From positions 472,476 to 536,475 of the forward strand of contig JALDTO010000162.1 in assembly GCA_023515725.1 (NCBI GenBank): a stretch of DNA of 64,000 nucleotides, in the 5' to 3' direction. The position numbers were made by a program, and so were the translations under genes. This document shows, piece after piece, positions 27,053 to 37,416 of the stretch; the first letter of the stretch is position 1, and every line of letters begins with the position of its first letter. Source of the DNA: Amoeboaphelidium protococcarum X5. Taxonomy: Eukaryota > Fungi > Aphelidiomycota. The notes below the pieces were generated by a model that saw only the letters and a program-made list of their open reading frames with translations, did not search any database and was not told the DNA's origin.

Positions 27053-27599
27053 ATTTATTGTTTTGAAAGAGATACCAAGATGTTTTAATTATGATGATGT
27101 AATACAAATCTAAAATATATAAAGTTTGTTTGCTCGTAATTTCGTTATCAGCCAAAAGTTAATTTATGCTCAGGCAAGATCCAGTAGTTAAGCTTCAGGT
27201 ATGTGTCTAAATTTAAAAATGGAAATCGCTGAATTACTATTATAAATAGACTTTTCAAGATTATAGACTTTCCGATAGAATTATTTGATAACCACCAGTT
27301 GTAAACTTCAAAGTAAAGGCTTCGTTAATGCTTTGTACTGAAATTTGATTAAATGTGCAAAGTTTTGTTAAATTTCATGCTCCGCTCGATTTGATCATCG
27401 GTTTCTCTCAACCTTATCATGACGCAGATCTACTGTACACTCGATTAGAACTACCTTAAATTGGAAAAATTTCTCAAGTACTGACCAGTGTTATTCAGTA
27501 ATAAATACAACTTGGATTCTTTCTAAAAAAATACTATTTCAGCATTGCTCTTGAAGACTTGATGTACTGTATGTATGTACAATATTGTTATCGACCTCA

Positions 27600-29534
27600 C
27601 TTTTAAAAATATAATCACGCCTTACCAAAACTTCCTACCTCCCTATCCCGGAGTGTCAGAGTAGCAAATATCATCTAATAAGGAAATTTCATCCGGATAT
27701 TACTCCAAAATAATGCCAATAAACCATTGCACACCTAATTAAGCCATTCTTTTCAAAATATTAATGTCTCTCACCACTGTCTGAATTGTAGCGGCCAATT
27801 AACTTTACAACTATTACGACAAAGAACCCTTGCTAAGGCATTTTCTCAACGATCCAACCTCCAGAGTAGACATAGAATGAGCACTTTTCAGCTTTGTCAT
27901 TAGCAATGTCTCTTCTGTATTATTTCTTTTCTAACCACTTGAACGCGCATCACATTTATCGCGAGTTAGAGAGAGCTGCTAGCACGATAGTTGCCACGTC
28001 TCGCTGTCTGGGAGGACTAAACACTTCTCTTTTTACGCGGAGCTACCTCGATATTGTCAGATTAGGTAGTATCATCACTGTCTTCCTAGCGTTCTTCATG
28101 ACTTTCAATATCACGGATGAATTTTGGCGTCTACTTCTTAGGCTGATGTATGTCCGATTTAGACCTGCGATTCCATTCAACCTCCTAGAACATATATCGC
28201 CCACCGCTTTATACTGACGTACCACTTTATCGATCATCAACATACTCCTTCTTATAAAGAGGCAGAAATCTATTGTAGCCTTTCCACCTTTTTTGAAGAG
28301 ATAAATAAGACACCTCTTCACGAGACTTTCCAACTTGACGGCTTTAGATTTTCCACTTTTAGTAGGCATCCATTTTTACAAATTTCAGCTAAAGGACGCT
28401 TTCATGCAACTTGGAACAAAGATTCCTTAAGGTATAAACTTCGTGGTACTGACGATGAGCAGCTGTCAATGAGCTAGCAGATATTTCGCGTCGGATCCAT
28501 TCCAATGTACCCATAGAGACGAAAACTTCTTCCTCCACACGCTTGAACAGTTTATCAAGCGAATTCTTTTCATAGTTCGGATCCCCCTCTAGGGACTGAA
28601 CAATGAGACTCTCTTGATTTGCGTCGAACACACGCAAGGCCTGACAGAATATGGAACCAACTTCCATCACACTCTGATATTAACTAACAATACTCTTAAC
28701 ATCTGAATGACCGGCTTCCATCAGCTTACGAATGATTTTCAAACTGCGCCCAAAACCGAATCCTTTTACATTGTCAGAGTAATCGTTGCCTGATACTACT
28801 GCGAGCGCAACCCAGGCAGAATTAGTTAGATTTAATTTATCACAGACCTCTTTCCTCTCCAGCACAAAAAATTTCATTAATCCGCAGTCAGATGTTGGCT
28901 TTGCAGCTACTAAGACATTCTTATGCATGAACAGATCAGAATCAAAGCTTACTGCGACGACTGGATCTTTACACTTGGCAATGTGAACATCTGCCTCTCC
29001 ACACGCAACTTCAACATTATAGCCCGCTTTAATCAGCTCTTAATGTAGATTTGACGCGTCATCAGCCTTAAAATGCCAAGTAGAGCGCTCAAGCTTTCCA
29101 ATCATGCACCACTTTGCTTTACTCACTTTCTGATCAACCGGCAGATTTTCTAAACAATTACGCAGTTTCAGAATTTGTTTCAGTCTTGCATTGACGCGTT
29201 TGAGAGAAGTCTGAGATTTCTCGCAAGTCTGCTCTCCTTCAAACACCAATGTGACAATGTCTTTTAATGGCCTAGCCTCACCTTAAACCATCACCATTTA
29301 ATTAAGAGGAAGCGCTGTCTTTACGAGATGGATGCTAGCCTCGAGGGGATTCTTGCTGCGATTGTAAATTCTGCGCAGATGACGATAGAATGTACCATTG
29401 AAGTCTACCATAATCTTGAACTGCGATCCTAAAGCTGAGGTGGCCATTTAACCCATGCTTTATATATCAACTGCTCTTTGATTGCTAAAGAGGTTCAGCC
29501 TTCTTAATTGACGATGAACTCCCTTTACACCCGT
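27600..29534 (-). pseudogene. FEN1/XPG-type PIN nuclease with long non-FEN1 C-terminal extension; ACG at the start position, frameshift ~27960, truncated
   Basis: (ACG)GVKGVH, IMVDFNG, LVFEG, ACGEADVHIA, SFDSDLF, ALAVVSGNDYSDNVKGFG; open 29534-27897 in table 6, continuing in another frame AHSMSTLEVGSL..KRMAQLGVQWFI..LLDDIC. Confidence 0.75.
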
Positions 29535-30794
29535 GGTCTTCTTCGAGTTGATTATACCTTACAGGAGTGAATAGACGACTGATTCAATTGAAGCGTGTTG
29601 GACGCATCGTATCAACGATGATCTGGCCAATAATGTTAAATCATACGGTTGAAACTGGATCGTCGACGGTATTGCGCAAGAGAGCTCATATTCATATTAT
29701 GGGTTAAGAAATAAGACTACAATAGCGCAACATTGTTTGAAGATATGTAAAGCATGCTGATGCTGATTGGTAACCGACTTAAAATTAATTGCGTGTTAAT
29801 TAGTGATAGTGTCAAAGGTAATTAATTCATCCATAGAATCAAGGAAACCATTTTCGTAAGACGTTCATTCGTAAAATCTTTCATTGAATAACAGGTCTTT
29901 AACTGTCCCTCCAACTTGAGGAAGGTAGTCTGCTAATTTGCAGTTTCTGTGCTTCCGGTAGAAGTATTGAAAGTCGTGATCAGTGAAGTTTGGACAACGA
30001 TTAATGAAACTAATCATCATCAACAGTGTAGATCGTTCAATTGCGTCGTCATATACAATATTATGAGCAGTTTACAACCCACAGATCGTAAATGAATATT
30101 CACAGGTTCATGCTGGAATTTCTTCTTTGCGAATGTAATTGTTCTAAATGTAATTATCAACTTTAAAAGATGCACATTGATATCAAGGCCGAAAGCTTAT
30201 AGAGACCTTTAGCCTCTGGTTCATAGACGCCATTATTAGCTAGACGATCAGCGTCACTCTTAGGCCAAACTGAGACAACCACTTCAGTGTTTGGCTTTTC
30301 AATTGCCACAATAAGTGATCGACACGTAATTGGATAAGATACCTTGTACTTAGGTTGCTTCTGAGGCTTAGCCCAAGAGACGGTCTACACACCAATGATT
30401 CCGTTTAAAGTTAACATATTAGATTAGATTTGATTTAAAATAGAGACTTAAACTGATTGAAAAAAAGAAGTAATTCAGGTAAAGTGACGCATTAAATGGG
30501 TGCGCAAAGCAGCGGTATTGGCGAATGCTTTGTTCATTTCATGTGATTGGCCGAATTACCTTGTAATTAAGTAAACTGCTTAATTTAGCTTATGTTACTA
30601 TTCCTGCTGATTTTTAGCAATATAACATCAAATGATAGAAAGGACTGATCACGTCGTCGTGGTTGAGCAATCGCGTCATTTTGTAGCGACGTCTAACATT
30701 GGCGGCGGCTCTATTCAGCTTTGTCTTTTTGAATCTTTTCGCCTACTCCTCTCTCTTTGCTCTCTGGTGTGAAAATCGCTTTGAAAATCTCAAA

Positions 30795-33649: not shown

Positions 33650-35163
33650 ATTAAAAGCGAAAGTGGAAGGAGTGTAGGAACTTTCATACGCGTACTGTGT
33701 ACTCTACAGTAAGATTAGGTATAAGGAATATTCTGATGGAACCTTAAATAGATTATTACCGACTTTAAGCAATATGAACATGCTTGGCCCAATCCGCAAT
33801 TATTTAGTTGCCAATGCTATAAGTCATACTCATGTATCCCGACCAATTTAATAATGAAGTACCGGTACTTGAAGTTCTACTTGATGTTCCGAGGCGATGT
33901 GTAAAGGGGAGCATTCGTTGAAACGCACCAAGTTAAATGAACCTCTGCCATGGACCTTCGATATCATTCATAAACAGTTTCAGAATATCGCCGATGATAC
34001 AAAGCCAAATCTTGAGGTGATATCCCATCCATACCAATCACTTGCACGTCCAGCGAATCTCGCCCGTCCATTGCAATCGGAACTCTATCAAGGGAAAGGT
34101 CCGGTAAATGCAGACATATGCAGAATTGGGGGTGATTCCTCGAGATGCGAACGCGCACATGAGCAGGAAAGCAAGGCACTTTTCTTGCTGAAATGTCCCC
34201 TGTATGATGACAGGCCCTCCGTTCTATAATGGTGTAATGAGGCAGAACTTTCTTTATTACTTTTAGACTACGACAATTGCAAGAGGAACATAGAATTTAT
34301 GGTAAGAACCCATAGATTCTACCATTGAGACAAAAGAGCACCTGCAAAGTGATTTTGACTCTATACAATGAAATTTCTGCTTCCTAAGAGTAAAGAGTTA
34401 CTAAAGCAAGTGACTCTCATTGAAAAGTGATTCAATATGAAAGCTCGCTGGGATCTCTGGAGTACTAGCAGATGAAGCGATTAAATGACTATGATAATTG
34501 CTGCACTTAATTGATCTAACTAAAAGACGAATGGTGGGCCTGAAGTTATAGAGGATTTAGCTAATCGCGTCTTGCATTTTTAGAAAGGCAATGAGTTTCT
34601 CATCTCTGCTGTTAAAAGGCGATAAGCTGCTTCTTTGAAATAAATGCCTTAATGCGTATAATTAGTGTATTAGAAAATTTATGTTGGATTTCGGTCTCAG
34701 CAAAAAGTGCAATCTTAGAACACTTAGAAAGAACTGCTCTTTGGAGGAAGTAGAGTTTATGCTTCCTGATCATTGCGGATGTGATTGTAAGAGTCAATCT
34801 TTTGAGAATTTGTTACAGTTCAAGCACTTTAACGTAGAAGAGTAAGATATATATATGCCTGCATGAAATGCGTTATTACGTACAAAGTTCAATTGTTTCC
34901 ATTATCAAGCTTATCAATCTAATTGCAGAGTACTGTGGTAGAATCAAGATTTAGATGAATATATTCTCTCTCAACTTAACGCTCGTTATAAATCTTTCAG
35001 CAGAAATTTTGGTATTAATAAATCTTACTTAGAGTCTACAGTGGATAGAGAGCCAATAGAAGTGGTTGTTCAGTAGATTTGTCAGATTAAGGACCCGCAT
35101 GACCAGGAAGATGATGATTCTGAATCCGTCAATAGTTAAGACAGTGTTGATGGCTTTTGTACT
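33650..35163 (+). pseudogene. Unidentified degenerate ORF (frameshifts, in-frame TGA at 34864) running into the Fanzor frame
   Basis: Coding-like segments in alternating frames; frame 1 is open from 34867 straight into the Fanzor ORF. No family recognised. Confidence 0.35.
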
Positions 35164-36201
35164 ATGATGACGCTGAAGGAGATTTGTGTTGCTGCCAATC
35201 TGCCATATGTCCGTCAGATGAATACTCACGCTCTGTGGTCACATTGTTTCAGATTGAACAAGGTCACTAGTTCTATAGATCAGAGAAGACGTTTTGGCTA
35301 CTCCATAACATCCGCTAATGTTGGCGGCCCTGCTTCCGTTTTACGGTCTGCGTATCGTGCCCCTCCTGCTAGCCGCTACGGGTTTGCTTTCGATGGTACC
35401 GGATACCAACCATTGGATGTAAACTATGAAACACACGTAATCGGAATTGACGTCAATCGTGGCGTACTTCTGGCTGCTTCTTGTGGTCCTGATGACCGTA
35501 TCCCAGATGTTCCAACCGAGCAGAGTCCGTTTGCAAATGGAAAGCAGGAGCTGGTATACACGACTGCCAGATGGCGTGAAGAGAACGGAGAAAATTTAGG
35601 TGAAAAGAAGTTGGCTGAATGGAATGAAAGAGCTCCAGAAATCGTTAATGCCATGGCCCACATTCCTTCCGCTAAATCAACTTCGTTTCTGGGAATCATC
35701 TAACATTTGCAGTACGTACTGTAACATAGAGATTCATTCACTGGCTTTCACCGTCCTGAGATGTGGCGAAAGCTGAGGAGAAAGCTAATCTCCAAGCGTC
35801 AAAGGGCCTATGACAATTTGGTGCGTATGTTAACTCTCCGCCAAGATGGTTAGTTTGACCATAACACCATCATAGCATATGGTGCTGGCAACTTTGTCAC
35901 TGCTTCTCCTGGATATCCTGCGACTCCCGACAAGCGGCTGTTTTATGAGCTGAAGAAACGCTCCGGAGTCTGCTTGGTGCATGAGTTTCAAACCAGTCAA
36001 AAATGTAGTAATTGCGAGTGTGAGCTTGGTCAATCACGAGTATGGAGAATTAAGCATTGCGCAAATAACAATTGCTTAGCTATCTGGCACCGTGTTGTGA
36101 ATGCTGCACGTAACATTCACTACATCTTTCTGGCAAGGAATCGTGACGGTGGTGAAAGGCCGGTTCCATTTCGATACGATCCTCCTCGCCCTCAATAATG
36201 A
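35164..36201 (+). CDS. Fanzor1 (eukaryotic TnpB-like RNA-guided endonuclease), C-terminal RuvC/Zn-finger half; RuvC-III Asp replaced by Val
   Basis: RuvC-I VIGID(35449)VN; IPSAKS; WRKLRR..KRQRAYD; TIIAYGAGNF..GYPATPDKRL; RuvC-II LVHE(35983)FQTSQKCSNC; IKHCANNNC; WHRV(36094)VNAARNI. Four in-frame TAA/TAG, TGA 36199-36201. Confidence 0.9.
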
Positions 36202-36275
36202 TCAGTCCAGGCTTCGGCGCAACAGTCTGATCGGAGGTGAAAATCCGTAGCTGTCCCTAATACACTTAAACTATG
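36199..36275 (+). ncRNA. Candidate Fanzor omega-RNA (scaffold plus adjacent guide)
   Basis: GC-richer island right after the stop: GATCAG(36200-05)/CTGATC(36227-32), cUUCGg (36212-17), CGGA-GGTGAAAA-TCCG hairpin (36232-47), ACAG(36222-25)/CTGT(36251-54); then AT-rich flank. Position matches the known Fanzor layout. Confidence 0.55.
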
Positions 36276-36345
36276 AAAATAACAGTAAATGTCTTTAATT
36301 ATATTTAAGAACTCTTTTAAATCATTTCTATCAACCAGTAGTAAT

Positions 36346-37416
36346 TCAACTGTTCTGCTCAATCTTCTAAATGACAGCAGCAGTGAACTCTGAGCACTTG
36401 GCCTTTCCGCCCAGATCGCCAGTTCTAACTTTACCTTCTGAGATCGTGTCAATCACACTCTTCTCAATCAGCTCAGCATACTCATCCAGATGCATGTGCT
36501 TCAACATCATACACGAGGAAAGCAGTAAAGCAGTTGGATTAGCCAAATCTTTGCCTGCAATCAGAGGCGCAGTTCCATGGACACTCTCAAATATAGATGC
36601 GGATTCACCAATATTTCCAGATGGAGTCAGACCAAGACCACCAATCAAACCGGCACACATGTCAGATAGAATGTCACCATACAGGTTAGGCATTACCAGA
36701 ACACTGTCCTTGTACATATTCGGATTGGTAACAATATTCAGACACGCATTGTCCAGGGACACGTCATCATGCTTGATGTCCTCAAAGTTCTTGGAGGCGT
36801 CTTGGAACGCGCTCAGAAACAGACCGTCCGAAGACTTCATGATCGCAGCCTTGTGCACGCAAGTGACGCGAGAACGGCCCTGATTCTTGTGGCGACGCGC
36901 ATAGTCAAATGCAAAGCGTACAACACGGTCAGATGCCTCCTTGGTGATTAGTTTGATCGACTGCACAACACCTGGCACTACTTCATGCTCGATACCGCTA
37001 TACTCACCCTCAGTGTTCTCTCTGATGATCACAGTGTTCACATCCTTGTACGGAGTAGGGAAGCCAGGCAGAGAACGGCACGGACGGACGTTGGCGTACA
37101 GATTGAACAGTCTGCGCAGAGTCAAGTTCAATGACACGTGTCCTTTCCCAATAGGAGTTGCCAGCGGACCTTTCAGCGCAATCTTGTTGTGACCGATACT
37201 ATCCAAGGCGGCTTACGGAATAGTAGTCTTGCCATCGGGCAATCTTACCGGAGTCACGTCCACCTCTTCCCACTCGATAGGCACCTGCGCGGCGGTGTAG
37301 ATCTTTTTCAGCGCTGCACTAATTTCCGGCCCAATTCCATCACCAGGTATTAAAGTGACGCGATGCTTAGTTCCCACTGACGCCAACTGTCTGGCAAATG
37401 TTTTTCCTTATATCAT
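36346..37416 (-). CDS. IDH2: NAD-dependent isocitrate dehydrogenase, catalytic subunit (yeast IDH2 / IDH3A)
   Basis: [52 protein letters not shown]; 357 codons. Confidence 0.95.

Follow-up and report, generated by a model that had tools for sequence, protein, structure and literature searches.

Does a 64,000-nucleotide stretch of DNA (hereafter, the window) from Amoeboaphelidium protococcarum, a parasite of algae whose genome comprises two diverged chromosome sets (subgenomes), contain at positions 35164–36201 a Fanzor1 RNA-guided nuclease gene, as proposed in an initial annotation made from the sequence alone? The aphelid-like host assumed there agrees with the actual source of the DNA. The reading of UAR as glutamine in A. 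protococcarum has already been published (PMC5304391), and in the window such reading (table 6) gave approximately 20 frames of more than 400 codons, with the standard code giving none. When translated in this manner, as had been advised, the 346 codons of the locus yielded one unbroken frame of 345 amino acids closed by TGA, with the reassigned codons lying where they had been placed, namely, TAA at 35701 and 35722, TAG at 35851 and TAA at 36196. The frame is open back to 34867.

The motifs on which the proposal was based, i.e., VIGIDVN, WRKLRR, AYGAGNF, E-x6-CxxC, a second Cys pair and the RuvC-III motif, were all found in the translation. The last 114 residues matched PF07282 above cut-off (E = 2.6e-7), and the whole 345-residue frame matched the profile of the family described below (E = 1.3e-88). 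While the frame is real, the gene as drawn is not, with Fanzor homology starting only at 35173. From there to 36201, on the plus strand, lies the 3' half of a Fanzor1, corresponding to residues 355–696 of a 696-residue protein (85% identity to intact copies over 345 residues) and covering the end of WED, RuvC-I, the bridge helix, RuvC-II, the zinc finger and RuvC-III, with a TGA stop codon at 36199–36201. The RuvC-I catalytic Asp (D447; 35449–35451), presented as D-V-N (cf. D383/N385 in SpuFz1), is intact, and its equivalent was invariant across 37–44 homologues. Similarly intact are the "alternative" RuvC-II Glu (E625; 35983–35985), six residues ahead of the first CxxC, and the C4 zinc finger (36004–36075; Cys at 36004, 36013, 36058 and 36073), with the canonical TnpB Glu position being occupied by Gly (G591 in the family; 35881 in the window). 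The RuvC-III motif WHRxVNAARNI was likewise present, but its "x" is the catalytic Asp position, and at 36094–36096 the window reads GTT (Val) instead of GAT (Asp). Asp was found here in 13 of 13 other family copies checked and in 35 of 35 aligned homologues, and no residues other than D and N are known to function at this position (PMC11423790); the substitution is predicted to have cost this copy its cleavage activity. The N-terminal REC/WED portion is missing, as had been suspected, with residues 1–354 being absent from the window. The window copy thus shows neither the full D-E-D(N) triad nor the WED/REC lobe of a functional Fanzor1 and, because the TAM-reading lobe and one catalytic residue are missing, cannot act as a nuclease. 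What had been taken for a separate nuclease gene is instead a relic, shortened at its 5' end and mutated in RuvC-III, that belongs to a multicopy element with intact 696-residue copies elsewhere.

A genome-wide search, also recommended in the initial annotation, did indeed recover full-length copies. Near-full copies numbered at least 12, in addition to numerous fragments, with DNA identity to the window being 89–92% from 35173/4 to 36288 and 11 other copies matching from this very point on, such that the element itself accounts for 35173–36287 only. Upstream of 35173, every other copy continues as Fanzor, whereas the window instead presents a frameshifted internal fragment of a KDZ transposase on the same strand (34382–35173; 87% identity to a KDZ ORF on C146), the frames of which are broken, as judged by tblastn. 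The ATG codons at 35164 and 35167 come from this KDZ scrap, by way of a 1-bp deletion there. On C146, the KDZ (Kyakuja-Dileera-Zisupton) transposase ORF (PF18758; E = 1.6e-11) is part of an 8.8-kb block that sits inside a Fanzor element, with a 10-bp direct repeat at its borders. Because this 10-bp sequence occurs once in uninterrupted copies, the block is a nested insertion. The C146 KDZ element (655003–663834) retains an unbroken transposase ORF of more than 1,100 residues, with what by eye is an Ulp1-like protease motif at its end.

The homeologue of the window locus, on C154, carries the same KDZ-Fanzor junction, and so this junction is not an assembly artefact and is older than the subgenome split. 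In the homeologue, all three catalytic residues are lost, with 15 synonymous and 54 non-synonymous private changes, frameshifts and about nine indels being seen. The private changes of the window copy (9 synonymous, 18 non-synonymous) did not differ from the neutral expectation (p = 0.16; expected synonymous share 0.26–0.31) and affect conserved motifs, including T-D-G-V and P-E-Y-R-T-S. Two observations count against a relic, namely, the lack of any frameshift or TGA in the 342 codons of the window half and its smaller number of private substitutions (27, as compared to 69 in the homeologue). Taken together, the locus is very probably the dead remnant of a non-autonomous, pogo-type (IS630-Tc1-mariner group) transposon that carried a Fanzor1. 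Its history could have begun with insertion of a KDZ element into a Fanzor element, as is still visible on C146, after which a deletion of some 6.6 kb in the compound copy would have joined the KDZ gene to Fanzor codon 355. The left end would have been lost, with the KDZ-Fanzor joining predating the subgenome split, and the RuvC-III Asp would have mutated later. Next to the element lies a host isocitrate dehydrogenase subunit gene (36346–37400, minus strand; PF00180, E = 5e-85), convergent with the element and ending about 75 bp from its right end, with a dS of 0.16 relative to its homeologue. In three DNA contig sets, coverage of the locus was confined to the IDH3 side.

Four of the copies, on C154, C212, C205 and C13, encode an unbroken protein of 696 residues with D447, E625, D662 and the four zinc-finger Cys residues all in place; a fifth has an unbroken ORF but bears D447E and C650Y. 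Over the whole ORF, dN/dS was 0.15–0.19 between intact and other copies and 0.14–0.22 among intact copies, showing that the intact ORFs are under purifying selection. A search of 1.8 billion representative sequences returned 794 matches, of which the best full-length ones were 30–41% identical. Although searches of the PDB with single sequences, be it pieces or the full protein, gave no significant match, the profile built from homologues matched solved Fanzor1 proteins over its whole length (SpuFz1, 6e-37; GtFz1, 1e-34; PpFz1, 8e-32), as opposed to 1e-9 for Fanzor2, with Fanzor2 and TnpB aligning only at the zinc finger, over the last 55 or so residues. An AlphaFold model of the 696-residue protein (pLDDT 89) used in a Foldseek search returned SpuFz1 with E = 1.7e-21 and TM scores of 0.60/0.70. 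The top three matches were the solved Fanzor1 structures (E = 2e-21 to 9e-18; TM 0.53–0.70), while TnpB, Cas12f, Fz2 and the rest gave TM scores of 0.37 or less. The comparison with SpuFz1 and TnpB that the initial annotation had called for therefore returned Fanzor1 (profile E = 6e-37, Foldseek E = 2e-21 to SpuFz1), rather than the absence of a match that it had named as speaking against its proposal.

The intact copies also carry published hallmarks of these proteins. The signature of Bao and Jurka, D-x(125–275)-[TS][TS]-xx-C4 zinc finger-x(5–50)-RD (PMC3627910), is found in all four as D447, T-S at 628–629, C632/635/650/655 and R661-D662. The rearranged RuvC-II of Fanzors, in which the canonical Glu is lost and a Glu appears just before the zinc finger (PMC10711439), is seen as E625-x6-C632 with Gly at 591, while the profile and the model both present the large REC/WED lobe and a fold of the Fanzor1, rather than Fanzor2 or TnpB, type. 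On the other hand, the DPG motif described as "near exclusive" to Fanzors at RuvC-I (PMC10711439) is replaced by D-V-N in the family; 35 of 38 homologues have DPG and 3 of 38 have N at +2. As SpuFz1 itself has D-P-N, DPG is typical but not required. In a FastTree tree, which has long branches and no solved Fanzor as reference and as such is usable for nearest neighbours only, aphelid Fanzors were spread over three or more places among relatives from metagenomes, and so do not make up the aphelid clade that had been envisaged. One relative, 28% identical, comes from a giant-virus-like ENA contig of 96 kb, where its neighbors are genes for D5 primase and AEP_C962R.

Nor had the genetic code hidden these genes. 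NCBI already holds a table-6 model of the window locus (KAI3636969.1/MIR68_005236), a spliced prediction of 424 residues that matches PF07282 and ends in exactly the 345-residue frame. The idea that the family had been overlooked because of the code is likewise at odds with the presence of full-length proteins from two strains in NCBI nr, 16 of them members of one cluster. The intact proteins are found in GenBank as KAI3633313.1, KAI3641888.1 and KAI3638071.1, together with several from the second strain, all listed as "hypothetical." Fanzors of A. occidentale, a member of the same genus, appear in the supplement of Saito et al. (2023; PMC10432273), while A. protococcarum accessions were not found in the supplement text searched, and no paper was found in which Fanzor and Amoeboaphelidium occur together in the main text. 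As far as the sources consulted extend, no paper describing the family was found, and a name and a description are all that it lacks.

Alignment of the copies, proposed earlier as a means of defining element ends and target duplications, did just that. Full copies, of which the four intact ones measure 3.35 kb and the mostly decayed remainder 2.8 kb, present imperfect terminal inverted repeats (TIRs) of approximately 26 bp between TA dinucleotides. In the window, the right TIR (36260–36287, plus strand), matching the inverted left ends of full copies, is decayed and ends in CAG at 36283–36285, followed by the TA target duplication at 36286–36287; the homeologous empty site of another copy has one TA. 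Homeologous empty sites were located by BLAST searches with the flanks. One candidate, a match to the joined-flank pattern with three mismatches, was rejected, not being the homeologue. The homeologue of the C212 copy is empty, with a single TA preceded by AT, whereas that of the C205 copy, on C245, reads TACAGTA (TA-CAG-TA). TA, the terminal 3 bp and TA is the canonical excision footprint of Tc1/mariner elements (PMC6943129). Of further homeologous sites, one ends in T-CAG-TA, a footprint-like remnant, and one has a small deletion. Because of the TIRs, the TA duplication, the one-TA empty site and the TACAGTA footprint, cut-and-paste mobility can be assigned to the family.

Short TIRs with TA duplication and an excision footprint are as expected of a pogo-type element, but no DD35D transposase is encoded in cis, none being found inside any of the family's copies. 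For the partner transposase, which the initial annotation had also proposed to look for, a pogo DD35D candidate can be named. In other samples, four full-length Fanzors that rank among the closest relatives are found directly downstream of sequence for an HTH_Tnp_Tc5 + DDE_1 transposase, and C207 contains an unbroken DD35D transposase 40% identical to those of the relatives, upstream of a second Fanzor (24% identity) that ends in the same TIR. DD35D transposases of this type are Passer-like (PMC9976928). The similarity of the TIRs suggests that such a transposase may act in trans on the family, and the C207 transposase and second Fanzor together form a candidate autonomous element. Transposases of the Tc1-type (DDE_3) were considered as partner and rejected, since their matches in the genome do not adjoin the TIR of the family.

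The second Fanzor1 family is found at C207:293362–303574 and C249:1397–2335, with tandem partial repeats. The left end of the first family is an inverted remnant of the 3' end of the second, RuvC-II/III relic included, making the element a chimera of two right ends. The left TIR of the intact C154 copy is cut short, its place being taken by 11 bp duplicated from the right flank; this left end is an aberrant insertion or repair product. On C205 (742106–742766), a non-coding element of approximately 660 bp presents TA and a related TIR at each end; it is a MITE belonging to this pogo group and, beyond the TIR, is unlike the omegaRNA considered below. Further Fanzor families are found at C200:298449–301430 (KAI3635164.1; 39% identity), the upstream end of which is common to the PIN element described below, and at C244:467466–467735 (about 29% identity).

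Other explanations of the window locus were weighed against that of a dead pogo-type remnant. The locus could have been domesticated, serving as a nuclease-dead half-Fanzor that binds RNA or as a stand-alone guide locus supplying omegaRNA in trans. The unbroken 342-codon frame, its having fewer changes than the homeologue, the retained 3' scaffold and the spliced 424-residue model predicted by NCBI are all compatible with such a role, as is the finding that SpuFz1 "ghost" loci yield working omegaRNAs (PMC10432273). Yet non-synonymous changes are not depleted and reach conserved motifs, the terminal stem and TIR have acquired several substitutions, the locus has lost the entire REC/WED lobe as well as its left end and promoter region, and the homeologue is destroyed, all of which render domestication improbable. 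Still less probable is that the KDZ transposase is the true partner, with the window representing an internal deletion of an autonomous KDZ-Fanzor element. At two loci that are not linked, in the window and on C146, Fanzor is indeed preceded by a KDZ sequence of like orientation, but the C146 block is nested between its own repeats, ten other full copies have no KDZ, and the ends with their TA duplication, as well as the footprint, are those of Tc1/mariner-pogo elements. Rather than KDZ and Fanzor recurring between the same ends in independent copies, KDZ was found nested in one copy only, and the proposal is largely refuted.

That TAA and TAG are real stops, making the locus a standard-code pseudogene or contaminant, can be almost entirely discounted. 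In the copy alignment, TAR and CAR exchange in seven codon columns, with codon 35722, for instance, being TAA in the window and CAA in 12 copies. TAR makes up 24% of Gln codons in the Fanzor family versus 56% in host frames (Fisher p = 0.002), and 67–68% in the KDZ and pogo genes. The assertion that the gene had adapted to the host code therefore stands insofar as TAR is used for Gln, but not as far as its share is concerned. The low share, calculated from a small sample, may reflect selection on codons or the family's having come later, from a donor with the standard code; it is also, together with there being only four TAR codons at the locus, what could be said for real stops. Shared TAR codons are, however, fixed in intact copies, in which the sequence before and after these codons is under purifying selection; TAR/CAR exchange and the published code speak for sense codons, and the flanks are host genes with the same code and with a homeologue. 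At 36196–36201, all copies end in TAA-TGA (Gln, stop); speculatively, this TAA may be an ancestral standard-code stop now read through to the next TGA. It is equally hard to credit that the fragment is the C-terminal half of a PIN/XPG-like ORF at 27.6–29.9 kb, split off by inversion. The two are in opposite orientation and 5 kb apart, and the C179 copy of the PIN element runs on into a Fanzor-like RuvC; the fragment, by contrast, is 85% identical to a family whose known N-half contains no PIN and has no match at 27–30 kb of the window, the homeologue lacks the PIN element but has the Fanzor half, and the C179 RuvC belongs to a different, distant family. The PIN element itself (27584–30644), broken at 27604 in the window, is a multicopy element of about 3.06 kb that is not found in the C154 homeologue; its minus-strand ORF (27897–29864) is XPG/PIN-like (XPG_I, E = 0.0065, below cut-off). 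The C179 copy, 94% identical, continues into a RuvC that displays the D, E and R-D motifs (profile E = 3e-12), and a PIN-Fanzor fusion there, if true, would be more unusual than the window Fanzor.

A candidate omegaRNA scaffold on the plus strand (36199–36287) begins with the stop codon and takes in the right TIR and TA. This sequence is kept in all copies, with conservation stopping sharply after TA. Three stems are predicted, the last closing on the terminal CAG-TA, and this last hairpin recurs in the second family; neither covariation nor folding statistics back the structure, as the consensus fold contained no compensatory pairs and single folds gave z-scores near 0. The 3' end of about 90 nt plus some 15 nt of right flank would constitute the omegaRNA, with the guide starting at 36288 in the window. 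Upstream, AT-TA is found at the left flank of 11 of 12 copies, a count from which one copy with an altered left end was excluded, and the mirror image was found in only 1 of 13 right flanks (Fisher p = 3e-5). A TAM of 5'-ATTA is predicted on this basis, although the bias could instead reflect an asymmetric preference of the transposase. By analogy to SpuFz1 (PMC10432273; reviewed in PMC13565253), the intact protein would carry out RNA-guided, TAM-dependent cleavage of double-stranded DNA reading 5'-ATTA plus flank. Such is the sequence of clean empty alleles, and their repair with a filled allele as template would restore or copy the element. Filled and footprint alleles, reading CAG-TA before the guide, would escape cutting.

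Between the intact C205 copy and its siblings, dS is 0.02–0.045, as compared to 0.16–0.24 for homeologous host genes. A footprint at the homeologue of so much younger a copy implies either homing followed by excision or an old insertion and gene conversion. In the former case, a young insertion would have been copied to the homeologous site of the other subgenome by Fanzor homing and later excised from one; this is a tentative and rather unlikely scenario. Homogenization of an old insertion by ordinary gene conversion is the simpler alternative, and the homing scenario is weakened by mismatches between homeologous flanks that begin nine bases into the putative guide. A 2026 review (PMC13565253) counts TnpB and IscB, but not Fanzor, among the nucleases for which restorative homing has been shown.

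The window copy itself is of little weight, with interest lying instead in the intact copies and the footprint. These offer an undescribed and apparently intact 696-residue Fanzor1 with a predicted TAM of 5'-ATTA for the editing toolbox, as well as a named type of transposase (pogo DD35D) for a Spu-1-like element. With filled, empty and footprint alleles being readable side by side in two diverged chromosome sets, the genome is also a place to test the open question of restorative homing by Fanzors (PMC13565253).

The closest described system is Spu-1 of Spizellomyces punctatus, encoding SpuFz1 (PMC10432273; PDB 8GKH, 9CEU–9CEZ). The two proteins have the same Fanzor1 fold (TM 0.6–0.7), D-x-N at RuvC-I and the alternative Glu, and in both elements a single ORF lies between inverted repeats of about 26–30 bp with no transposase inside, some 80–90 nt separate the stop codon from the right end, and full and partial copies are mixed. 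Bases 5' of the left repeat are conserved in each, being CA-TA in Spu-1 and AT-TA in the aphelid. The proteins, however, share only about 15% sequence identity, that of the aphelid having an N-terminal CCHC knuckle, and the aphelid element is 2.8–3.35 kb long, has a predicted TAM of ATTA rather than CATA and uses TAR for Gln. A partner transposase (pogo DD35D) can be named for the aphelid, while none was found in Spizellomyces. The window copy departs further from Spu-1 and SpuFz1 in being truncated and RuvC-III-mutated. PGv-1, PUl-1 and PUl-4 (Bao and Jurka, 2013; PMC3627910) are likewise TA-duplicating TIR transposons carrying a Fanzor1, and among Tc1/mariner Fanzor1 elements the transposase is in cis or absent and chimeric elements are common, as in the aphelid (PMC3627910). 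What sets the aphelid family apart from PGv-1, PUl-1 and PUl-4 is a transposase of the pogo DD35D type (Passer-like; HTH_Tnp_Tc5 + DDE_1) and a left end that corresponds, in inverted form, to the right end of another Fanzor family. "Fanzor" and "pogo" were not found together in the literature searched, where "Mariner" may include pogo. Within the genus, KAI3658238.1 and KAI3657820.1, among the Fanzors catalogued in the Saito et al. (2023) supplement, come from a different species, A. occidentale. With Fanzor2/IS607 and IS200/IS605 TnpB, the aphelid protein has RuvC and the C4 zinc finger in common and, in the case of Fanzor2, the alternative Glu; unlike these, the aphelid element encodes neither a serine recombinase nor a Y1 TnpA and is instead delimited by TIRs and a TA duplication.
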